Positions 2,345 to 64,000 of a DNA stretch of 64,000 bases are shown here, piece after piece. The notes below the pieces were generated by a model. It was not told where the DNA came from and did no database searches. It saw nothing but the letters and a program-made list of their open reading frames with translations. Every line of letters begins with the position of its first letter. The first letter of the stretch is position 1. A program made the translations under genes and the position numbers. Origin of the DNA: Dimorphilus gyrociliatus (lineage: Eukaryota > Animalia > Annelida); contig CAJFCJ010000035.1 in the NCBI GenBank assembly GCA_904063045.1, positions 1 to 64,000 on the forward strand, given 5' to 3'.

Positions 2345-3094
2345 GTTCAAAATAGTTATTATTGGATAGATCCTGAAGTTGTCAGGACCACTCAATGAAA
2401 ACCTTGCCTCATCCGTAAATATGACTCTTGACCAATCTAAGTTATCTCGAATAGTTTTTAAACAATACTGTTTCCTTCTGTTGCAGTCATTGCTTGTGAG
2501 ATCAACTCTTTGTCAAATTCGTTTATAACGAAAATTTTGCAATTTCAACTCTCTCTGAATTGTCTTCAGGCCTAAATCTACCTCTAATTCATTTAAAATC
2601 TTCCTAGCAGTTACCCTTTCCTTGTTTCTTTTAAGTCTCTTCACAATCCTATTCATTCTTGCTACATCTCTTTCTGTGAGTCTCTTTGGACGACCCCTAT
2701 TCTCTTGTTTGGGTGGCTTATACCTTAAAATGTCGCTAACTGTAGATGATGCCATTCCCAAAGCCCTTGCAGTTTCCCTTACTTTCCCCAATTCTTCATA
2801 TTTCTGGATTACCAGGTTCCTAACCTCTTTTCCCCATGCCATAATGAAATAAATGATATAAAAATTAACTAAAGTAGGTAAAATAGATAATAAGTAATCA
2901 ACTTAACTTGGAAAATTAATTTTGTTGAAAAAAATGTCAGTTTAAGACGTCTATTTAAAAGCAAAACCTGATGTAATCCGGATGTATTTAGACAAAAAAA
3001 ACCAATTGAAAACAAAGATAATATTTTTGGGGTGTTTTCAAAATTGGCCTATCAAAATTTACAGTGTCCGGGTATTTTAGACCGTCACTTTATA
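2345..3094 (-). mobile_element. Tc1-family transposon 5' half (HTH plus first catalytic Asp), defective
   Basis: MAWGKEVRNLVI...GRPKRLTERD paired-like HTH, an in-frame stop, then VIFTDEARFSLSGPD. TIR-like tataaagtgacggtctaaaatacccggacac at the 5' end. Confidence 0.85.
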
Positions 3095-3184
3095 TAACAT
3101 TTAAATAATCTTTGAAGTTGTATTGAAAACCTGTTTTACCAACAAAAGGTTATTTTATTGAGCCTACTTTTGCTATGTTGGTAA

Positions 3185-4010
3185 AAGACTATTTAAGACT
3201 GAATACCAATTGTATGGTGATAATATCTGTATGGAGCCAAAAATATTTTACAAGTACAATATTGCAACATGTGGCTCTTTGTGGTTTTACATGTCCTATA
3301 TCCTGGTCTCCAACAGTCAAATGTGCTATGGCTACTTGCCATACAGTTTTCACATAGGTTCAGCCTTCTAACTGCTTTGCTTCGATCCTCAATGCTCATT
3401 GTTATGAATTGTGGGTAATTCCTTAATGGTGTGGCTTTCCACATATATAACAATCTATTTCTTTTCTTTCCTTTGTTGCCCTGCCCATTTTTTCTAACAC
3501 AGCAAAGGCGGCACCGAATTTTGTTTTATTTCCCCATATTCTGAGCATAGGAATTTCATTGTACTATTGTTGGCATCCTTTGTGATGATCTGAATCTTTC
3601 TACCTCTTCTTACTCCATACCCAAGTGCCTATTTCATCATCATCAATGCTATCTTCCATCCTATCAAAGGCACATGCATCCTTTTGTGTGGTCCGGCATT
3701 GCTAGCCAGATGTTGTATGTTTTAGCCTACTTATATGGACTTGTGTCATTGATAGGTCTTCATCATTGCTTTCGTTTGCAGTTACTGCACTGTTTCTCTT
3801 CCTTTTTCTGGAAGACATCCCTCTTTCACTAGAACAGCTGCTGCTCTGTGTTGAGCCATGACTGTTTTTTGGTCTTTTGCTGCCCCAATATAAATATTAT
3901 TTATATCTGCTTCAATATTCTCCTTTCTCACATCATCATCAATGGAGCGTATAACAAGATAAAGACTTACGGTCTCTCTTTTGTTTTTGTTCACTACCGT
4001 AATTTCATTA
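3185..4010 (-). mobile_element. BEL/Pao retrotransposon gag remnant
   Basis: Frameshifted CYICGKPH-LRNYPQF followed by FITMSIEDRSKAVRRLNLCENCMASSHSTFDC..TCKTTKSH, matching the BEL/Pao gag cysteine-knuckle pattern. Confidence 0.75.
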
Positions 4011-4492
4011 ATTGTTTAAATAAATTAGTAATAGCATCAAAATGCTATTTTCACTCATCGTCGATCTTAAAGCCCTCTATACAACCGGTTTAGTGAGTTT
4101 TTGTTTAATTATAGTCTAACAATTCATACACATATTGAAGTTTCAATACAAATTTTTTAATAGGTAACCTGCTGCCCTATTATTGCTAATTTCGTTTACG
4201 CATGATCTGTCTCACTTGTCTGTGACGTTTAAAAGGAGCTGTTTGGAATAGGTTGAACTATTCAAAAGTAAATTACTTGGTGTAGTTGTGAAGGAAGCTC
4301 AACTCTGAGGTATTTGTTGATGATAAAAACTGTATATTATTAATATTTATGAATTAGAAACAAGTATAGTGTTTAATGAATGTAATATAGAATAACTATG
4401 CTATTTATAATTAACTTTATTATGAGACAAGATGTAGTGATAAGTGTCAATTTCTATATAGAAAACTCTCAAAAGTTTAAGGAAAACTGAAT

Positions 4493-43881: not shown

Positions 43882-44916
43882 TCAAAATATCACATTCAAC
43901 CATTTGTTACCCTTTCCAAGTTTTTTCAACATTTGTTCTCTGTTATCACCAAAAGTGCAATCGTCAGCATAAAAAAACTTTAACATTTTTGGTGGTTGTT
44001 GACAAAGTTCAAAAATATCAAAAATTCCATTACCTATACAAGAATTATTTGATAAATCTATTGTTTCAAGTTTAGAACATTTATTTAAAAGATTTCCAAT
44101 ATTTTTGCATTGATCTTCTTCCAAAAAGCATTCCCTAAAATTAATATTCTTCAATGTTTTAGATGATTGTTCAAGTCCCTCACATATATCAAGAAATCCA
44201 TTTTTCATATTTATATTGTATGATAAATATACTCTTTCTATTTTAGAACATTTTTTCAAGAGATTTCCTAACTTTACACATTGTTCTTTATTCAAATTGC
44301 AGTTATTAACATCAATTAACTTTAGTGTTTGTGATGAATGTTCGAATCCTTTGCATAGATCAAAAAATCCATTTCCCATACATTTATTGTATGATAAATC
44401 CATTTGTTCTATTTTGGAACATTTTCTGAGAAAATATCCTAACTTTGTGCTCTGTTCTGTGTCTAATTTACAGTTTCTAACATCAATAACCTTTAAACTT
44501 TTGGACGATTGTTCAAGTCCTTCGCAAATATTGAACAATCCGTTAAACATTAAAAAATTCGATTTTAAATCTATTGTTTCTATTTTAGAACATTTTTTTA
44601 AAAGACTTCCAAGTTTTATGCAATGTTCTGCTTTCATATCACACCGCTCCAAATAAATAAATTTAAGTGTTTCTGATGATTGTTGAAGTCCTTCACCGAT
44701 ATCAAAAATTGAATTTCCCATATGTTCATTGCCTGATAAGTCTATTGCTTCTATTTTGGAACATTTTTTCAAAAAATTTCCCAATTCTATACATTCTTCA
44801 AGTTTCAAAAAACAGTGCTTAAAAGTTATATACTTTAATGTTTCTGATGATTTTGCCAGTCCTTCACAAATACTAAGAAAGCAAGTTTTCATGGTTTTGC
44901 TAGTAGTTTTATACAT
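43882..44916 (-). CDS. RI-type LRR region (about 6 x 57-aa diverged repeats); probable 3' part of the NLR at 47139-48878, with a frameshift at its 5' edge
   Basis: Periodic LKxIxxxxCxLxxEQCxxLGxxLKKCSKIExIDLSxN. The upstream KKEQCIKL motif is in a different frame near 44900. Confidence 0.8.
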   Translation of the reverse strand: MYKTTSKTMKTCFLSICEGLAKSSETLKYITFKHCFLKLEECIELGNFLKKCSKIEAIDLSGNEHMGNSIFDIGEGLQQSSETLKFIYLERCDMKAEHCIKLGSLLKKCSKIETIDLKSNFLMFNGLFNICEGLEQSSKSLKVIDVRNCKLDTEQSTKLGYFLRKCSKIEQMDLSYNKCMGNGFFDLCKGFEHSSQTLKLIDVNNCNLNKEQCVKLGNLLKKCSKIERVYLSYNINMKNGFLDICEGLEQSSKTLKNINFRECFLEEDQCKNIGNLLNKCSKLETIDLSNNSCIGNGIFDIFELCQQPPKMLKFFYADDCTFGDNREQMLKKLGKGNKWLNVIF

Positions 44917-46097: not shown

Positions 46098-46923
46098 GGG
46101 GTCGGGAAAAAACGTCCTTGGGAAAAAACGTCCCAGGGCGGGAAAAAACGTCCTAATTGTTGGGAAAAAACGTCCTATGCCTGGCTAAAGATATACTTGG
46201 CATAATTATTTATACTTATAATCAGAAATGTTTTTCTCTTTGCAGTTTATTTCATTTATAGAATAAAATATTAATATTTTTGAAGAAAGGGATATGTATT
46301 GTGATGTTTTTACCAGTTTTCTCTGAATTATGTAATGCTATTAAAAGAGAAATGAGTTATTTCCTTGTCTTGCCTGTAAGTGAAAGATAAATTTTGCATT
46401 TCTTGGCATATTTTCAGGCTAATTTGTTTTTTAAGCATTGAAACTCTGGTATTGATTTAGTTTATTGAATATTACAAGATTATACATTTTTTAAGAACAC
46501 TTCTTTCCAGTGAGTTATTATTTATAATTTTTGTATAGGCAGCCATATTTGATAGTTGATTCAATTAATCTATTCAAAATAATTCTCAGTGTCTTAACAT
46601 ACTTTTTACTTTATTCTAGTAAGTTTTAAACTTTGTATAACATTCTTAGCTTTTTTCATTTTTAATACATTTTAATAAACATATATTCATTATTAATTAT
46701 TATATTCTCAGTATATTGCCATTGGTTCCCAAAATAGAGCAATCTTTTTTAAAATTCAAATATCTTTTCCCACTACTTGTTTTTCCCAACCTTGGGACAT
46801 TTTTTCCTAACCTTGGGATGTTTTTTCCCACACTGGGACGTTTTTTCCCACCCTGGGACGTTTTTTCCCAGGGACGTTTTTTCCCAAGGACGTTTTTTCC
46901 CAAGGACGTTTTTTCCCATACTC
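46098..46923. mobile_element. MULE-type MITE with gggaaaaaacgtcc subrepeat TIRs; no matching TSD
   Basis: Four copies at 46098-46190 and seven inverted copies at 46780-46923. Terminus ggggtcggg is identical to 37385. The flanks ttctatgac / gtgcaaatg do not match. Confidence 0.8.
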
Positions 46924-47138
46924 GTGCAAATGGAAACTTGCAAGATAGTTTGTAATATTTTATCAAACTGTGTGTTAGTTTTTTACAATTGAAAAGATGT
47001 TTTAGTTTTGATATTTTTTTCACATTTTCAATTATCTCTAGAGGATTTAATTTTAAGAAAGATAATTCAGGATGTTGGCTAAAATCCAATGGTAATAGCA
47101 GTGTCCTGACACTTATTCATGTATTGCAAAAATTTACA

Positions 47139-48878
47139 TTAAATAGAAAAGCATTTTATTAAAATATTCCAATTAACATTTGTATCAAATAGTTTGACAT
47201 TTTTCAAATTTTTCTCAATACTTTGAAACAAAATGACTATTTCATAGTCATTCAATGTTTCATGTTTTAAAATTAATTTTGTATTTGTATTCAAACCTCT
47301 CTGTAAAATTTCTTTTATATTGTCACTAAAGCTAAGATTTTTTTTAGCAATTTCATTTTTTTGCAAAATAGTTTCAAAAGTTGATGGAGATTCGTCTTTG
47401 ATAAATTCCATTACATTAAATATACAAATACTATCCATTTCTTTGAAAAGATCTTTTGTAAAACCAAAAAAATTTTGTAACCAATAAAAGACACTTTTTG
47501 TATTTGTAAACTTTTGAATTAGATATTTAGTAGCAAAAAATTCTTTGAATGATTCATCATAAAATTTTAATTGCTTTCTATCTGATGAGTAAGGGAAAAT
47601 TTCTGCCACATCATTCAGATACATGTTAACAAATGATTCTTCTTTCCAGTCTTCATCTAAAATTATTTGGGATTTAGAAAGATTTAGAAAGCACATTTCA
47701 TAGAATTTATAAAAATTATTATTGTTTTGTGAACTTGTGATGAATCCAGCCTTTTTTTGCATTGTATCAATTAATTCATTGTATAAATCAAAGAGATTTC
47801 TATCACATATAGTTTCTTCCCTTTTAAACCAAGTTTCAACAATTACCATTGCTAATTCTGGGATTTGACACAAATTTTGTATTTTTCTATATCTTTTCAA
47901 AATTGTGTTTATGAATTGACATTCTTTATTATTATTTTCCACATAACAATTTCTGTTCTTAGCATAACTTTTCAGAAATGACTGAAATTGAACAGTATTC
48001 CATCCCATTAGTTCAATTACAATGTCGTATGTACATTTAATCTGGTTTGCTCTACAATTTCTAGACCATATTACTGTTTGAATATTGCAATGTGAATCAT
48101 GGATAAAATTGTAAAATTGATGGCCCTGAAGATGGAATTGATCGCCTCCATCCAGAAATAGTATGACATCTTGTCTTCTTTCAGAAAATATTGATTGAAC
48201 TATACTTTCAGTAATATAAGGAATATTTTTGAAATTTTGTAAATATATTTCCTGATAGATATTTCTTTCATGGCTGATTTTATTCAAATTAACAAATATT
48301 ATCAACTTTTCTTTATCAACATTCCATTTTTTATTTGCCCATTTATATATTAAATATTCAAATTGAAAACTTTTACCAATTCTTGCTTCTCCTTGAATTA
48401 AAATTTTCTTGAAACCTTTATAGAATATATGATAAAAGTTATTATAATTGATGTCTGCTAAATCAAGATCATCATTAAAAAAGTTACTATCTATTATTTC
48501 AAAACATGCTTCTGTGTTATGTTGTTTGGCTTGAATATTTAAAAACTCTTTTTTTCTCTCCTGTTGAGTATCATGAATGAGAGTTTTCCAAATTTTTTCT
48601 CTATCCTTAATACATTCAGCTAGTAAACTGGCTTCTGAATTATTCAAGTAGTTTACGACATCAATTACATAACCCAGTGGTTTATTCTCAAGAATATTCA
48701 ACTCAATTGCCAATTTTCGCTCTTCACATTTGAGGATTTCTGATCTATCCATATTTGAATTATGATGTAAATTTTTAAAATTTTCCTGGTTTTTGTATAA
48801 TTCTTTAATATCATTCTTATATAATTGAAAAGACAATTTTCCCAAAAAATCCATAATTCTATTATCAACAAAATCCAT
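47139..48878 (-). CDS. NACHT NTPase (NLR-like) with probable N-terminal death-fold; LRR continuation disrupted
   Basis: ILIQGEARIGKS Walker A, VILFLDGGDQ Walker B, IWSR sensor, LCQIPEL, FYDESFKEFFATKY WH motif. Stop at 47139, then a frameshifted LRR-like stretch to the MITE. Confidence 0.85.
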   Translation of the reverse strand: MDFVDNRIMDFLGKLSFQLYKNDIKELYKNQENFKNLHHNSNMDRSEILKCEERKLAIELNILENKPLGYVIDVVNYLNNSEASLLAECIKDREKIWKTLIHDTQQERKKEFLNIQAKQHNTEACFEIIDSNFFNDDLDLADINYNNFYHIFYKGFKKILIQGEARIGKSFQFEYLIYKWANKKWNVDKEKLIIFVNLNKISHERNIYQEIYLQNFKNIPYITESIVQSIFSERRQDVILFLDGGDQFHLQGHQFYNFIHDSHCNIQTVIWSRNCRANQIKCTYDIVIELMGWNTVQFQSFLKSYAKNRNCYVENNNKECQFINTILKRYRKIQNLCQIPELAMVIVETWFKREETICDRNLFDLYNELIDTMQKKAGFITSSQNNNNFYKFYEMCFLNLSKSQIILDEDWKEESFVNMYLNDVAEIFPYSSDRKQLKFYDESFKEFFATKYLIQKFTNTKSVFYWLQNFFGFTKDLFKEMDSICIFNVMEFIKDESPSTFETILQKNEIAKKNLSFSDNIKEILQRGLNTNTKLILKHETLNDYEIVILFQSIEKNLKNVKLFDTNVNWNILIKCFSI

Positions 48879-51125: not shown

Positions 51126-51492
51126 TAATAATTTAGAATACCTAAATTTTCAAGGATGTCAAATATCTAAGGATATGAGTGGAGAATTTGGAAAATTTAT
51201 TGGAAATCAAACAAAACATAGAAGATTGGACTTTTCTGGTTTAGATTTGAGTGGGTAATTGGGAAAAAATTTATTTAGTAATATCACAGACAAGTTTTGT
51301 AATTTAGAATACCTATATTTTAAGGGATGTCAAATATCTGAGGATATGAGTAGAGAATTCGGAAAATTCATTGGAAATCAAAAAAAACTCACGGAATTAG
51401 ACATTTCTGGTTTAGATTTGAGTGGGCAATTGTGAAAAAAGTTATTTGTAATATCCCAGGCAAATTTTGTAATTTGGACTCTCTGGATTTTT
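51126..51492 (+). pseudogene. Orphan cassette of about two 171-bp LRR units from the 58.2-61.2 kb NLR array, inverted relative to the gene
   Basis: NLEYLNFQGCQISKDMSGEFGKFIGNQTKHRRLDFSGLDLSG*LGKNLFSNITDKFCNLEYLYFKGC...LTELDISGLDLSGQL*. Confidence 0.92.
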
Positions 51493-55770: not shown

Positions 55771-57960
55771 CACAAAAAGACAAGATATAGGGATTTATAA
55801 TTGAACTTAGAGGTAAAATTGTAACCATTATCCATTCAAATTCATAATTTTCCACTGGAACTTTTGAAAATTGAATTAAAAAATGTAAATAACAAATAAT
55901 TAATCATTTTCTATAAAATGTTTATAAGTGTTTTTTTTTAATACCTAAAAGAGAGACAATTGTCCAAGTTAACATATGACTAACAGTGGAAATAACAGCA
56001 TTCATGTTAACACTTCTTTGATTAGACAACTTTCCAAATTTTTTAAATGACCCCTTTATTATATGGATAAATTCACAAGTTAAATAAAACATAAAGATGC
56101 TTAACAAAGGCAAAATGATGCAAAATATGATAAATTGATAAAAAAAATATACAGTTGAATTTTCCAAGTTGAGTATTGAGAAACATTTTCTGTCATTTTC
56201 CTGACAAAAAAAACTCTTGAATATAAACAAAAATTGTACCAAAAAAGTATTAAAAACTAATTACTTTGTGAAAAAAGACTATAATCATTGATAAAACCAG
56301 ACAGAATATGAATGAAATTGCAATAAATATGCTTTTAAATATCCAAGATTTACGCTTCTCCATTGGGTACTTTACCACTCTATTTCTTTATAGTGTTATG
56401 AATAGAATACCAATAGAGGATAAGAGTAGGGAAGAGAAGAGTGTGATTTGCAAAACTTGACAGAAAAAACTTTTGACCCAGGTGATATCATTTTCTAAAT
56501 ATGTATTTCCATAATAGAGGTCAACAGTGGCAATTGATATCATATAGAAAGATATGCACAAGTCAGCAAAACTTAGTAGTTGTTTAAAATGTTTCGAGGA
56601 ACTTTTTGCCCTAAAAAGTAAAATTGTTGAAAGAATATTTCCTAAACAACCAAACACTCCATTAAGCCAATATAAAACTATTTTACTTTTTGAATGAATA
56701 AGCCTCATACATTGTGGATAGTTGAGTAGTTTGCCTGCTGAACAATTGACATTTTCACCAAGGTATTTTATAGAAAAACAGCAAATTTTTGAATTGTTTG
56801 TATACATTTTAGACACTTTAACCATATCTATAAAAACTCTTACAATTTCAAAATGAGAGATAATTGTATAAGGAATAATTAATTTTTTTAATTTAAGTAA
56901 ATAGGTAAAACTTCCATCTTCTATTGAATGAATAAAACAACCTTTTATAATGAATGTTTGTAATTGTCTTATCAGATTAAGGTGTGATTTTAATAGTATT
57001 GTTATATTTGTATGTGATATATCCAAATAATTCAAATGGCTACATTTTAAATGATATAGAAATGATAAAGATTGAATTGGATTATAGGAAATTATCAATT
57101 TTTGAAGTAGTTTTAATTATTTTTTAGAATTATATTATCATTTTCACCTACTAATCCATTTTCAGTTAATGACAGACTTACTACATTTGGAATATTAATA
57201 TTCAAATTTTTAGTCAAGAATCTGTTACTTTTACTGATAATTAAGATTGTTAAATGAGTAGAAGTTGTATGAAAAAGTTTGTTTTTTTTTGGCAAATTGC
57301 CAGTAATATTTAATTTTCTTATACTTTCTATAAGTTTAAATTTTAAACTTTTATTGTTTGCCTGTTGTTTCTCAACTATTACATTATCCACAAGTGATTT
57401 GAAGTGACAATTGAATGAAAATGTGGAAATTTCAATACAACCTGGAAAATTTATTATTGGAATTTTACATAAAAGCTCATCACTTCCATCAAAAAATTAA
57501 ACAATTCCATTGCATATTTGATACATAGTCAGTCTTTGACTTGAACACATAAAAAATCCTTTTGGGTAAAAATTTCCTAAAAGTAAATGAAATTAGATCT
57601 ATATAATATGTTGCTTTTTTTTTCTTTTCTGTTTACCACAATCAACTTCATCATCGCCTTGAGGACATTTGTTAATTCCATCAGAAATAAGATCAAGAGA
57701 AATGCAATAAGCTTCTCTATAGCAAAGGGATTCGCCATAAGAACAAGATTTTTTAGAACAGGATTCTGAGAAATTTGGGTTTAATTCACTTAATACATAT
57801 CCTAAGGATGATGTTGTAACAAAACATTTTGCTATTTTCCTATAAGGTGTATTAGAAACTAATCTTTTGCATTGCAGAATTTCATATAGAAAATTTAGCT
57901 GAGGAACACAAAATGCAAAGCATTCTTTTTGAGTATCATTTCAACAGGCTAAAATATTAA
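55770..57960 (-). pseudogene. GRL101-like GPCR pseudogene (paralogue of 17292-22969)
   Basis: LDLa EAYCISLDLISDGINKCPQGDDEVDC and QICNGIV*FFDGSDELLC, LRRs, TM1-3, nonsense ITL*RNR where ERY is expected (56388), frameshift near 57105, TM7 LPLSSIINPYIL. Confidence 0.82.
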
Positions 57961-58160
57961 ATGAAAAAAAAAGCATTGTAAAAAATGCATTTCTAAATTT
58001 TTTTTAAAACCATATTTATATTCTTTTGAAATTGAATTTGAGTTGAAGCATAACTCATCCCTTCTATCAAAACACTCAACTTCATTATTGCAAACTTTGT
58101 CTTTATTAATGCATTGTCCATTTTTGCATTGTCTAAAAGAAATAAATTATCAGATACCAT

Positions 58161-59239
58161 TTAATAACTAATTAAATCACTGTACACTTCATTTTCACAT
58201 CTTTTAAAATTTAAGCATTCTAAATTACAAAACTTGTCTGTGATATTACTAAATAAATTTTTTCCCAATTGCCCACTCAAATCCAAAGTAGAAAAGTCTA
58301 ATTTAGTGAGTTTTGTTTGATTTCCAATAAATTTTCCAAATTCTACACTCATATCCTCAGATATTTGACATCCTTCAAAATTTAGGTATTCTAAATTACA
58401 AAACTTGTCTGAGATATTACTAAATAAATTTTTTCGCAATTGCCCACTCAAATCTAAACCAGAGATGTCTAATTCAGTGAGTTTTGTTTGATTTCCAATA
58501 AATTTTCCAAATTCTCCACTCATATCGTCAGATATTTGACATCCTTCAAAATATAGGTATTCTAAATTACAAAACTTGTCTGTGATATTACTAAATAGAT
58601 TTTTTCCCAATTGCCCACTCAAATCAATATCTGTAATGTTTAATGTAGTGAGTTTTGTTTGATTTCCAATAAATTTTCCAAATTCTCCACTCATATCCTC
58701 AGATATTTGACATCCTTTAAAATATAGGTGTTCTAAATTACAAAACGTGTCTGTGATATTACTAAATAAATTTTTTCCAATTCCCCATTCAAATCTAAAC
58801 CTGACATGTCCAATCTTTTGAGTTTTGTTTGATTTCCAATAAATTTTACAAATTCTCCACTCATATCCTCAGATATTTGACATCCTTCAAAATTTAGGTA
58901 TTCTAAATTACAAAACTTGTCTGTGATATTACTAAATAAATTTTTTCCCAATTACCCTCTGAAATTAAAACCAGAAATGTCTAATACAGTGAGTTTTGTT
59001 TGATTTCCAATAAATTTTCCAAATTCTCCACTCATATCCTCAGATATTTGACATCCTTTAAAATTTAGGTATTTTAAATTACAAAACTTGTCTGTGATAT
59101 TACTAAATAAATTTTTTCCCAATTACCCACTCAAATCCAAAGTAGAAAAGTTTAATTTTGTGAGTTTTGTTTGATTTCCAATAAATTTTCCAAATTCTTC
59201 ACTCATATCCTCAGATATTTGACATCCTTCAAAATTTAC
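58161..59239 (-). pseudogene. Six-plus LRR units beyond the NLR stop codon, ending in a natural-looking C-terminus
   Basis: Repeat continues in phase past TGA 59240-59242. TAA stops at 59123-59125 and 58952-58954, 1-nt deletion near 58778, final open segment 58161-58694 ending RCENEVYSDLISY*. Confidence 0.85.
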
Positions 59240-61200
59240 TCATTGTAAATTACAAAACTTGTTTGTGATATTACTAAATAAATTTTTTCCCAATTGCCCT
59301 CTGAAATTAAAACCAGAAAAGTCTAATTTATTGAGTTTTGTTTGATTTCCAATAAATTTTCCAAATTGTCCACTCATATCCTCAGATATTTGACATCCTT
59401 TAAAATATAGGTATTCTAAATTACAAAACTTGTCTGAGATATTACTAAATAAATTTTTTCCCAATTGCCCACTCAAATCTAAACCAGAGATGTCTAATTC
59501 AGTGAGTTTTGTTTGATTTCCAATAAATTTTCCAAAGTCTCCACTCATATCCTCAGATATTTGACATCCTTTAAAATATAGGTATTCTAAATTACAAAAC
59601 TTGTCTGAGATATTACTAAATAAATTTTTTCCCAATTGCCCACTCAAATCTAAACCTGACATGTCCAAACGTTTGAGTTTTGTTTGATTTCCAATAAATT
59701 TTCCAAATTCTCCACTCATATCCTTAGATATTTGACATCCTTGAAAATTTAGGTATTCTAAATTACAAAACTTGTGTGTGATATTACTAAATAAATTTTT
59801 TCCCAATTGCCCTCTGAAATTAAAACCAGAAAAGTCTAATTCATTGAGTTTTGTTTGATTTCCAATAAATTTTCCAAATTCTCCACTCATATGCTCAGAT
59901 ATTTGACATCCTTCAAAATTTACGCATTCTAAATTACAAAACTTGTCTGTGATATTACTAAATAAATTTTTTCCCAATTGCCCACTCAAATCCAAAGTAG
60001 AAAAGTCTAATTCATTGAGTTTTGTTTGATTTCCAATAAATTTTCCAAATTGTCCACTCATATCCTCAGATATTTGACATCCTTCAAAATTTAGGTATTC
60101 TAAATTACAAAACTTGTCTGAGATATTACTAAATAAATTTTTTCCCAATTGCCCACTCAAATCTAAACCTGACATGTCCAAACTTTTGAGTTTTGTTTGA
60201 TTTTCAATAAATTTTCCAAATTGTCCACTCATATCCTCAGATATTTGACATCCTTTAAAATATAGGTATTCGAAATTACAAAACTTGTCTGAGATATTAC
60301 TAAATAAATTTTTTCCCAATTGCCCACTCAAATCTAAACCGGACATGTCCAAACTTTCGAGTTTTGTTTGATTTTCAATAAATTTTCCAAATTGTCCACT
60401 CATATCCTCAGATATTTGACATCCTTTAAAATATAGGTATTCGAAATTACAAAACTTGTCTGAGATATTACTAAATAAATTTTTTCCCAATTGCCCACTC
60501 AAATCTAAACCGGACATGTCCAAACTTTCGAGTTTTGTTTGATTTTCAATAAATTTTCCAAATTGTCCACTCATATCCTCAGATATTTGACATCCTTCAA
60601 AATTTAGGTATTCTAAATTACAAAACTTGTCTGAGATATTACTAAATAAATTTTTTCCCAATTGCCCACTCAAATCTAAACCTGACATGTCCAAACTTTT
60701 GAGTTTTGTTTGATTTCCAATAAATTTTCCAAATTGTCCACTCATATCCTCAGATATTTGACATCCTTCAAAATTTACGCATTCTAAATTACAAAACTTG
60801 TCTGTGATATTACTAAATAAATTTTTTCCCAATTGCCCACTCAAATCCAAAGTAGAAAAGTCTAATTCATTGAGTTTTGTTTGATTTCCAATAAATTTTC
60901 CAAATTGTCCACTCATATCCTCAGATATTTGACATCCTTCAAAATTTAGGTATTCTAAATTACAAAACTTGTCTGAGATATTACTAAATAAATTTTTTCC
61001 CAATTGCCCACTCAAATCTAAACCTGACATGTCCAAACTTTTGAGTTTTGTTTGATTTCCAATAAATTTTCCAAATTCTCCACTCATATCCTTAGATATT
61101 TGACATCCTTTAAAATATAGGTGTTCTAAATTACAAAACGTGTCTGTGATATTACTAAATAAATTTTTTCCCAATTGGCCACTTAAATCCTTTTGTGAGA
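58190..61200 (-). repeat. Coding tandem array, 17 x 171 bp (57 aa, RI-type A/B LRR pair)
   Basis: The marker atatttgaca recurs at 58361, 58532, 58703, 58873, 59044, 59215, 59386 ... 61096 with 171-bp spacing (one 170). Confidence 0.97.
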
Positions 61201-64000
61201 AATTCAACATTTTTATATTTGTTTGATTTCCCAGAAATTTTCCAAATGGTACAATCATGTCTTCAGAGAGTTTATAATTTGTGATATCAAAATATATCAA
61301 GTTGCAAAATTTGGTTGGAATGTTTTCCCAAAAGTTTTTTTGCAGTTCTATATCTCTTGTGTGCATTATTTTAATTTCTTTTATGAATAATTGTCTGCAA
61401 AAAAGATCTTTAAATTTTTGAATTATTAGAGGATTTATATAATTTAAGTCAGAAATTGTAAATTTTTGAAGTTTTTTTTGTGCAAGGGCTAAATCCAATA
61501 TAAATTTCTGAATTTCATCTGATTGTGTAATGAGTACAGATATACTGATCAGTTTAGTGAATTTGTACATAAGGGCTTCTATTAAGCTATACTCATTTGA
61601 AGGGAACAATAATTTGCTGATTGTAAAGTTTTCAATATTAACACTTCCTGCTTCATGCAACATAGCCAATTTTGTAGCACAGTAAGTATCATTTATCTCC
61701 AATGTTTGAAATTCAAGAACATCTGAAAACATTTTCCTTATGTGTGTTATAGAATTCAAGTTAAAGTTTTTGTCATTAATGTAAGTTTCAGACAATAGCT
61801 TTGCCTCATTTAAATAAAACATTTTAGAATTATTCAAGATACTTAAACTAGTTAAATGTGATATTAAAATTGTCAGTTTAAGCAATAGCTCTCTTGTCAT
61901 ATTCTGACTATGTATAATTAGCCTTTGAACTTTCAGACTTTTCAATTCTTCCAAAAAGAATACCATGGATTTGTTGTCAAATTTATTTTTTGATATATTA
62001 ACACATTGTAGTTCCATTAAAAATTTTAAATTTTTAGCAAGTTCCATTAAAATTATGCTTTCTAAATTATTCTTTGAAATATCTAAAGTAGTTAGAGTAA
62101 AGTTGCTTTCCAATGGAGTAGTGTTTCCAATGTATTTTTTTGTTTTCTCTGTGATAAAAATTTTGAGTGATATTAACTTTGATATATTTATCAATTTGTA
62201 TACAATTTTTAGAAATTGTTCAGAAGAGGTTAATGATATTCCACAGAGATTTATATATCCACCAAATAAAGGTGAATTTTTTGCTTTTGCTTTATCTATC
62301 ATTTTTTCAAACACATTCAATGATTGCTCATTGGATAAGAACAAATTTATATTCCTTAAGCCAGATGATTGATGAATAACTTTTTGAAAAATTTTTCTAA
62401 AGAATCCATTGTTTAAATCATTTTCTCCTGAATCAAATAATTTAAGAGAAAACATTATTTTTAAATCTTTGTCATCATCAGACCATTTGGTATTATCCAA
62501 TTGAAATAAAGGTAATTTCAATTTTATTAGTTTAGCCAATTGAAAAAAGTTCTTTAAACAAAGAAATTTTTTACATTTAGTAACAATATTTCCAGCTAAT
62601 TGAAGATTCTCAAGATTGCTAAGCTTTTCTGACATATTCTCCAGTAATTCGCTTTCTAAAACAAATTTACAATCATTCAATTTCAATACTTTTAAATTAT
62701 TGAAATTTTCTATAATTAAATTTAGGAGCTGGTTTTGTTGCAGTTCATTTAATGAAAGCCCACTTAAGCCAAGACAAGTAAGACCATTCTTTTCATTTAG
62801 AAAAGATACAATTGCTTCAAAATTGTTACCTGTTAAACCACAGTAGCACAATTTTATTGATGTTAGGTTTTCAAATTCTTTCAAACTCTTAATTGTTTTG
62901 TTATCTGTTTTAATATTTAAAATGTGTTGATTATTTAAACATTGAAGTTAATATTTTATTACTCACCAATATGTTGTGAAAAAGAAAAGTCAATCTTTGT
63001 TAGAGAATAGATTTTTCCAAAGGGAATGTTAAATTTATTCTGTAATCCTAATAGTGCCAATTTTTGCAATGCAGGAGCAAACAAACGTTCTTCTTCACTT
63101 AATATTGCTACATTTCTTAGATACAGTGTCTGTAAGTTAGGAAAGGTTGTAAACAATGGCTGCAATTCTTTGAAAACTGTGCTATTATCATCAAAATCAT
63201 ATTCAATTTTCAATTCCTTTAGGTTTTCATTAACATTCATGTTAGATAAAATATCAAAAAATAAGATAGAATCAAAATAAATGTTATGAAAATGTAATTT
63301 TGTAACTGAATTGACTTTTTCCAATTTCTCCATAAATAAATCAAGAATTAATGGTGTGAATAGTTTTTCTTTCAAAGTAAAATGCTCTTGCATTTCTGTA
63401 TCTAGTAAAATACTAATTATATCATCATCGCAATTTTCTAATATCATTAAAAGTTTTGGGTTAACTTTAAGAATCATATTGTAGATGTTTTCATCTGAAT
63501 TTTTAATAAAATTCAAAACTCTCTTCAATCTGATGGCTTGTTTTTCATTAGAAAATTTTTCTAGCAATCCATCATTGGGGCTTTCATTTCTTAAAATATG
63601 ATTCACAATATATTGTGAAGCAAAATACTCTTGAAATAAAAAGTGAAAAAACCTAAATCTTTTAGTGTTGTTGGTATAACTATCATTCAGTTCATAAGTC
63701 AGACCTACCAAATTTTTTGTCCTTTCTATGTGTTCTTTAGCAATTTCCATTGGTTCACCAGTTAATAAATTGTTAAATGCCATTTCACCAATTAGCGATA
63801 CAACAAATTCTTTATTTTCATTTGAAATTTCAATTTTTTGGAATTGAATATTAATGACTTCATTAAAAACACTATTAAAATCTTTCAATTCTCTCCTTTT
63901 GTTTTCCCAGAGTGCTGCAGTTAAAAAAGCAATTAATGGATATTTACACAAGTCAAATATATCTGATCTTTCTGATTTTAGAAAATGAAATAACTGATAG
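59240..64000 (-). CDS. NLR-like receptor: NACHT-associated helical/WH domains plus long RI-type LRR region (5' part outside window); intron 62905-62966
   Basis: LCKYPLIAFL, LIGEMAFNNL and FRFFHFLFQEYFASQY are NACHT HD1/WH motifs. A 62-nt GT-AG intron joins ORF 62959-63951 in frame to ORF 59240-62884. The frame is open to the window end. Confidence 0.9.

Follow-up and report, generated by a model that had tools for sequence, protein, structure and literature searches.

A young, mosaic leucine-rich-repeat array with a probably recently silenced tail in a predicted NLR gene of the annelid Dimorphilus gyrociliatus

Introduction

Sensor repeats that diversify rapidly while being homogenized internally are characteristic of fungal NLRs. 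The high internal conservation (HIC) repeats of these receptors, which belong to the WD40, ANK or TPR class, are 80 to 100% identical to one another, are shuffled by unequal exchange and are subject to diversifying selection at a few surface positions, as exemplified by HET-E, HET-D and NWD of Podospora (WD40) and by the ANK and TPR NLRs (PMC4986451, PMC12222747). Fungal NLRs lack leucine-rich repeats (LRRs) (PMC4986451), and for the LRR domains of animal NLRs no description of repeats of this kind was found in the searchable literature. Here, we describe a 3.1-kb tandem array of LRR units which closes a predicted NLR gene of the annelid Dimorphilus gyrociliatus, located on the minus strand of contig CAJFCJ010000035.1 (C35), of which the first 64,000 nucleotides constitute the stretch analyzed (the window). 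It is considered probable, though by no means certain, that this gene is a member of a Dimorphilus NLR family in which the LRR array has recently been expanded and homogenized through exchange between units and in which the tail of the array has recently been silenced.

In vertebrates, exons 5 to 9 of NLRP3 measure 171 bp each and encode a 57-residue (28 + 29) module (PMC10950545), while in groups 2b and 4 of the zebrafish NLR-B30.2 family the LRR exons have been duplicated more than 20 times and are not particularly variable, recognition being ascribed to B30.2 (PMC4852459). The D. gyrociliatus genome paper reports an approximately 78-Mb haploid assembly of approximately 350 scaffolds with very short introns and few expanded families, mostly locally duplicated immune genes; a literature search returned no paper on the NLRs of this species.

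Anatomy and age of the array

Tandem Repeats Finder (TRF) delimits the array at positions 58193-61189, with a period of 171, 17.5 copies, 92% matches, 0% indels and a score of 4786, in agreement with the 171-bp array described in an initial annotation of the sequence. When cut in register, the array comprises 18 units (0 to 17) and a partial terminal unit, each full unit of 171 bp encoding 57 amino acids, i.e., one 28-residue and one 29-residue LRR of the ribonuclease inhibitor (RI) type. Unit 0 (61130..61300, minus strand, as are all other units) is a diverged first unit which differs from unit 2 at 45 of 171 positions, and pairwise unit differences otherwise range from 0 to 24 of 171 nucleotides. 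It is followed by the near-identical, translated units 1 to 11 (59249..61129), by units 12 to 17 (58224..59248), which form a silent tail behind a stop codon, and by the partial terminal unit (58161..58223), which ends in SDLISY and a TAA codon (58161-58163) and probably represents the ancestral C-terminus and stop. Support for such an ancestral C-terminus is provided by an open reading frame (ORF) at 58161-58694 and by a relative, P0001, which retains the same unit type up to its own C-terminus. The 11 units initially counted within the ORF correspond to units 1 to 11, to which the diverged unit 0 has to be added, and the half-unit variants that had been listed are all present.

Sequence and structure prediction alike assign the repeats to the RI-type (28/29-residue) LRR class. 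The array matches RI itself (phmmer E=7e-13) as well as the LRR domains of NLRP proteins, in the same 57-residue register, and an AlphaFold2 (AF2) model of units -1 to 6 (mean predicted local distance difference test score [pLDDT], 87; predicted template modeling score [pTM], 0.83) displays a strict alternation of 3-residue strands with 10- to 12-residue helices. The best Foldseek matches of this model are the horseshoes of NLRP, NLRC4 and RI, with a TM score of 0.70-0.74 to the latter.

The proposal that the array is young is supported at the sequence level, because units 1 to 11 show no silent difference at all outside two variable segments (proportion of synonymous differences, pS=0), because DNA at least 89% identical to the units is confined, in the 78-Mb assembly searched (77,897,245 bases in 349 contigs), to this gene and a decayed two-unit orphan copy at 51129-51475, and because the units of the nearest relatives have diverged. 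The closest paralogue (C44), whose NACHT exon is 45% identical, carries the same unit type in diverged units which do not form a TRF-detectable array, while the P0001 relative (L023), which derives from another sample, possesses units of this type that are 38-46% identical, again with no TRF array. The assembly contains no second allelic contig for the array.

The mosaic nature of the array, also proposed initially, was evident from several analyses. Units 2 (60788-60958) and 7 (59933-60103), whose products had been noted to be identical, are identical in DNA as well (0 of 171 differences) and constitute the only indistinguishable pair in the array, and exact tracts of 310 bp and 239 bp recur at shifts of 855 bp (five units) and one unit, respectively. 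Of the 190 pairs formed by 20 informative biallelic sites, 72 fail the four-gamete test, with a minimum number of recombination events (Rm) of 5 within the 171-bp unit, and in a neighbor-compatibility permutation of the pairwise homoplasy index (PHI) type none of 2000 permuted orders reaches the observed value (p<0.0005). As all four gametes occur and neighboring sites are more compatible than in permuted order, recombination rather than recurrent mutation is indicated, which supports the description of the array as a recombinational mosaic of a few half-unit variants.

Architecture of the array-bearing gene

The gene is predicted to extend from C35 64941 to 59240 (minus strand), with two exons, a single 62-nucleotide intron and a CARD-like-NACHT-LRR domain order. 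Exon 1 (C35 64941 to 62967) is represented within the window by positions 62967..64000, its 5′ remainder lying past the window end, and its reading frame corresponds to a 660-amino-acid ORF with an ATG start (C35 64941-62959, minus strand). The encoded NACHT domain (Pfam PF05729; E=5.5e-10; 39.8 bits against a curated cut-off of 26.7; residues 147-295, C35 about 64057-64503) retains intact Walker A (GEAGVGKT) and Walker B (LLLDGADE) motifs; the ATG, the CARD-like domain (amino acids 1-96 of exon 1) and the NACHT P-loop region are situated just beyond the window end. The intron (62905..62966), read directly from the sequence, is of the GT-AG type (GTGAGT...AACAG) and in phase 1, and the codon that it splits into G and AT keeps the frame, thus joining exon 2 (62904-59240) in frame to the NACHT exon.

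The first part of exon 2 (61301..62904, approximately 534 amino acids) specifies diverged LRRs of the same unit type, which lead into the array; this stretch yields a weak LRR_6 match, and in the AF2 model its last unit continues the solenoid. LRR_4, LRR_1 and LRR_6 exceed their Pfam cut-offs in the LRR exon of the gene. At a G+C content of 26-31% around the locus, exon 2 contains no stop in 1,220 codons, against about 117 predicted from base composition, and the predicted product of approximately 1,879 amino acids is specified by codons which include no TAA, TAG or TGA (the two exons were searched separately). With a NACHT domain above its curated cut-off and C-terminal LRRs encoded in one gene, the locus is, as judged from its sequence, an NLR gene, as had been annotated. 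When public assemblies were searched for the exact products of the exon-1 and tail ORFs, no match was returned, and a word-based protein search with exon 2 retrieved only a weak NLRP3-like match in fish and a single relative, which came from another sample.

The N-terminal head is probably CARD-like, an assignment which derives from modeling. For residues 1-96, AF2 predicts six helices with a pLDDT of 92-96 from an alignment of 5 paralogue sequences, and in a structural search against representatives most of the top 50 matches are CARD, PYD, DED or death domains, with root-mean-square deviations of 2.5-3 Å over 70-85 residues. The assignment is given as probable only, because the Z scores of 5-7 are not decisive for helical bundles, Foldseek matches are not significant (E about 1) and Pfam, like an ESM Atlas feature search, yields no match.

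Distribution of variation and selection

It had been proposed that variation in the array is concentrated in the predicted ligand-binding strand. Across units 1 to 11, 21 of the 57 codons vary, 19 of them in amino acid, while the helical parts, previously described as nearly invariant, are entirely so at the protein level. When the first 12 LRR positions of each repeat (codons 1-12 and 29-40) are taken, a priori, as the strand/loop segment, amino-acid-variable codons account for 13 of 24 within this segment versus 6 of 33 elsewhere (Fisher p=0.009), and structure prediction places these segments at the strands (unit positions 3-5 and 31-33) and ascending loops of an RI-type fold. The proposed concentration therefore stands; it does not extend to a restriction to the exposed x positions of the strand, since core positions vary beside exposed ones (L1F, L4V, F34M/I, L37F and L39F).

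A codon-level test does not reveal a replacement excess in this array, because silent differences cluster in the variable segments to the same degree: codons 1-7 and 30-40 have a pS of 0.18 and a proportion of nonsynonymous differences (pN) of 0.18 (ratio, 0.98), compared to a pS of 0 and a pN of 0.026 for the remaining codons. Variable columns are distributed over codon positions 1, 2 and 3 as 14:5:10. The six private mutations of the translated units (codons 7, 14, 18, 31, 53 and 53), which are presumably the most recent ones, are not strand-concentrated and are nonsynonymous throughout (nonsynonymous to silent, 6:0). Strand-focused variation was consequently not accepted as proof of positive selection in the focal array.

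Two of the B-half types are separated by 11 differences within 24 consecutive nucleotides, against at most three in the other 147. As judged from sequence comparison, the array thus combines a scaffold that was freshly homogenized with a small number of strand cassettes that are older and strongly diverged. Selection may keep these cassettes apart or, alternatively, heavily mismatched patches may simply resist conversion.

A different pattern was apparent in an independent, paralogous array. The genome holds at least 59 NACHT loci related to the focal gene, and among the 20 loci covered by an array scan several possess 171-bp arrays at 68-81% identity; several paralogues carry stops. The paralogue on contig C112 (L022, G000:C112:63300-73299; array at L022 2664-6588) harbors 23 units of 171 bp at 90% identity, of which the twelve indel-free units yield a pN of 0.153 and a pS of 0.017 in the strand/loop codons (ratio, 8.8), compared to a pN of 0.029 and a pS of 0.112 in the rest (ratio, 0.26), and at one codon seven different residues occur, which are without exception due to changes in the first and second positions. 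Such a pattern corresponds to the sequence signature expected of diversifying selection on the binding face, and it renders diversification of the binding face plausible for the family, although the focal array alone does not exhibit it. A further NLR array (L020, G000:C305:10900-16267, positions 2751-4181) comprises 8.4 copies of 171 bp, which share 77-81% identity and show a higher-order period of 513 bp.

The silent tail

Translation covers units 0 to 11 only, leaving one third of the array untranslated in the assembly. The present ORF ends at a TGA (59240..59242, minus strand) at codon 3 of unit 12, which reads TGC or TAC in other units. Behind it, CAA-to-TAA changes occur at codon 42 of unit 12 (59123-59125) and unit 13 (58952-58954), two units which have this TAA in common despite 17 other differing sites, and a 1-bp deletion in an GGGAAAAAA run of unit 14 (at about 58771-58778) reduces that unit to 170 bp and shifts the frame. 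Units 15 to 17 and the terminal partial unit (58161-58694) form a 177-amino-acid ORF, which in the shifted frame stays uninterrupted as far as the ancestral stop. An alternative genetic code was considered for the stops, as TAA read as Gln and TGA read as Cys each fit locally; it was rejected, given that no known code has both and that the 1,879 upstream codons are free of TAA, TAG and TGA. A cryptic intron by which units 12 to 14 would be skipped was considered as well.

Private mutations number 17 over the 1,026 bp of the tail and 6 over the 1,881 bp of the translated units, a fivefold difference in density (p=2e-4), and in the tail they replace the framework glycines G17, G20 and G44. At the sequence level this excess fits relaxed constraint, to which a more recent homogenization of the translated part would add. 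Given that unit 16 is only 4 nucleotides from unit 10, and unit 17 only 4 from units 2 and 7, the tail appears to have been recently separated from, or to have exchanged with, the translated part. All four lesions would be expected to disappear if any one of units 1 to 11 were to exchange in register with any one of units 15 to 17.

Interpretation and alternative explanations

We propose that the encoded protein begins with a CARD-like death-fold head and a NACHT ATPase, which are followed by diverged RI-type LRRs and the array of 57-residue LRR pairs. By analogy with characterized NLRs, the role of the LRR horseshoe would be to keep the NACHT switch in its off state and to accept a ligand on the concave sheet; ligand binding would in turn permit oligomerization via NACHT and signaling via the death-fold head. 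The mosaicism observed would be generated by in-register unequal crossing-over, together with short-tract gene conversion between units, a process which is predicted to keep the helical scaffold identical while reassorting a handful of older strand/loop cassettes of 24 to 30 nucleotides, thereby altering the number and order of the units as well as the residues that line the sheet. The premature TGA would terminate translation after unit 11, with the tail evolving unconstrained yet still exchanging with the translated part.

Certain points weigh against this interpretation. Array length, unit order and the four lesions are all derived from one pooled-animal PacBio RS II/Quiver/Pilon assembly, in which the C112 array is rough, with approximately 45 one-base deletions clustered in four units. 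The death-fold assignment consists of matches with Z scores of 5-7, obtained from a 5-sequence alignment and without Pfam support. As the pN/pS of its variable segments is about 1, the focal array does not demonstrate adaptive diversification; of the initial proposal, the youth, mosaicism and strand focus of the array are borne out, and the rapid formation of receptor alleles is conjectural. Finally, a truncated protein devoid of its ancestral C-terminal end could be nonfunctional.

This last point leads to an alternative which we regard as possible, if on balance unlikely, namely, that the gene, within an NLR family under birth-and-death evolution, is a pseudogene that died recently and that its array arose neutrally, through replication slippage and unequal exchange, with no function in diversification. 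The strand-focused variation would then derive from older, diverged units in which mismatched patches of 24 to 30 nucleotides resist conversion, a reading in keeping with the equal concentration of silent differences and the variability of core residues. The premature TGA, the two TAA codons and the frameshift are readily accommodated, as are the stops in several paralogues and the decayed orphan copy 8 kb away; less readily accommodated is the openness of the 1,879 upstream codons, given the number of stops expected in exon 2 alone. Likewise, while the exclusively nonsynonymous, unfocused private mutations of the translated units speak for this alternative, their density is one-fifth of that in the tail, and the helical scaffold has remained invariant in protein throughout units 1 to 11. 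The strong site-specific replacement excess in the C112 array also weighs against this alternative.

An assembly artifact, in whole or in part, is rather improbable. In such a case, array length, unit order or the lesions would have arisen during consensus building or polishing of long reads from pooled animals, the published assembly having been produced from pooled females using PacBio RS II (5-kb size-selected library), PBcR, Quiver, Pilon with 101-bp reads, HaploMerger2 and SSPACE-LongRead; polishing with 101-bp Illumina reads within a 171-bp tandem repeat lends some weight to this concern. In the C112 array, adjacent units at L022 4664-5320 contain 6-13 one-base deletions each and only 1-8 mismatches, which looks like raw, unpolished long-read sequence left in the scaffold, so that the 171-bp arrays of this genome do not appear to be uniformly polished. 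The focal array contains only one indel in 3.1 kb, its units are distinguishable save for one pair, with 310 bp as the longest exact tract, and, being shorter than the library size cut-off, it should be spanned by single reads; its length and unit order are therefore probably right. The single-base deletion of unit 14, situated in the GGGAAAAAA homopolymer run, is the most suspect of the lesions and may be a consensus error. The nonsense changes of the tail are more likely to be real, as they are substitutions, a class of change untypical of long-read error, and are accompanied by an excess of ordinary substitutions.

It is very improbable that the tail is a maintained store of donor cassettes, copied into the expressed units by conversion or unequal exchange in the germline or soma: although units 16 and 17 lie close to units 10 and 2/7, units 15 to 17 are open in their own frame to the ancestral stop and exchange with units 1 to 11 could remove every lesion, simple recent common ancestry would produce the same closeness, the replaced glycines and the excess of private mutations indicate decay rather than maintenance, and a somatic process is without any evidence.

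Related and neighboring genes

Outside the D. gyrociliatus assembly, the same two-exon NLR layout was observed in L023, a Logan contig of SRR23372229, with a 693-amino-acid NACHT ORF, a short gap and a 1,638-amino-acid LRR ORF. At the DNA level L023 and the C44 paralogue share 70% identity, so the family is present in a second, related organism.

Within the window, the orphan two-unit copy (51129..51475, plus strand) is closest to units 9 and 10/16 and has decayed; it carries a TGA, a 1-bp deletion and a TAA of its own at codon 42, where tail units 12 and 13 also have theirs. A neighboring NLR, also on the minus strand, consists of a NACHT exon (47139..48878) and an LRR ORF (43882..44916), which has the 171-bp period previously ascribed to it, with units of a different type that have diverged to 68% identity. 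Its two parts are approximately 2 kb apart, and positions 46700-47089 between them are occupied by 16- to 41-bp tandem repeats of the GGGACGTTTTTTCCCA type, which also translate as a repeated peptide; this gene may have been interrupted by an insertion.

Close to the array, an LDL-receptor class A (LDLa) exon (58045-58131, minus strand; Pfam E=4e-7, profile positions 9-34 of 37) has its AG acceptor only about 27 nucleotides past the ancestral stop of the NLR gene, and it is followed on the same strand by ORFs with LRR_8 and weak 7tm_1 matches (56388-57098 and 55922-56242, minus strand). As judged from its domains, this series represents a relaxin-receptor-like LDLa-LRR-GPCR. Because the first third of the LDLa domain must lie in an upstream exon, the focal NLR gene may be situated in an intron of this gene.

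Comparison with known systems

With regard to repeat class, the worm array shares with RI and the vertebrate NLRP proteins the 171-bp/57-amino-acid A+B module, in sequence (E=7e-13 to RI), fold and register. While the vertebrate NLRP modules are separate, diverged exons, the 18 worm modules are contiguous in a single exon and near-identical. The intronless worm module corresponds exactly to the one that forms the exons of NLRP and RNH1 genes in vertebrates, which bears on how this module has spread.

The zebrafish NLR-B30.2 genes resemble the worm genes in constituting an animal NLR family with lineage-specific expansion and multiplied LRR units, for which gene conversion has been invoked; they differ in possessing one LRR per exon, and strand-focused variation has not been reported for them. 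In the variable lymphocyte receptors (VLRs) of the lamprey and the chicken immunoglobulin (Ig) pseudogene cassettes, silent LRR (or V) cassettes likewise adjoin an expressed gene of the same repeat type. The worm locus, unlike these, lacks evidence of programmed or somatic copying, and its silent units look like the decaying tail of an array.

The closest analogue in mechanism is the regime of the fungal HIC-repeat NLRs. Differences are apparent in that the worm repeats are LRRs in an animal host, that a third of the worm array lies behind a stop, that exchange between paralogues was not seen for the worm array and that positive selection at the variable sites was seen in a worm paralogue and not in the focal array. 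The likeness comprises a NACHT-type receptor of the STAND (signal transduction ATPases with numerous domains) class, near-identical C-terminal repeats, shuffling, variation on a few predicted interaction-surface positions and the occurrence of the regime in more than one family member. HIC repeats are at least about 80-85% identical, and the focal array has 92% nucleotide matches; shuffling is evident from the four-gamete failures and the exact tracts at unit-multiple shifts; and with respect to surface focus, variation in the focal array is focused at a pN/pS of 0.98, while the C112 array shows 8.8 versus 0.26.

A more far-reaching proposition, which we consider improbable, is that animal NLRs run the fungal HIC-repeat regime with LRRs, in-register exchange homogenizing the scaffold and reassortment affecting the cassettes of the binding strands, that the silent units serve as a reversible reserve and that individuals or cells differ in their arrays. 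If such a reserve exists, a single unequal exchange would restore silent units to frame, or silent units would donate cassettes. Should unit number and order prove polymorphic from worm to worm, this annelid with its compact genome would make receptor diversification through repeat shuffling tractable in an animal, and a third route would be added to those of gene-family expansion and somatic rearrangement.

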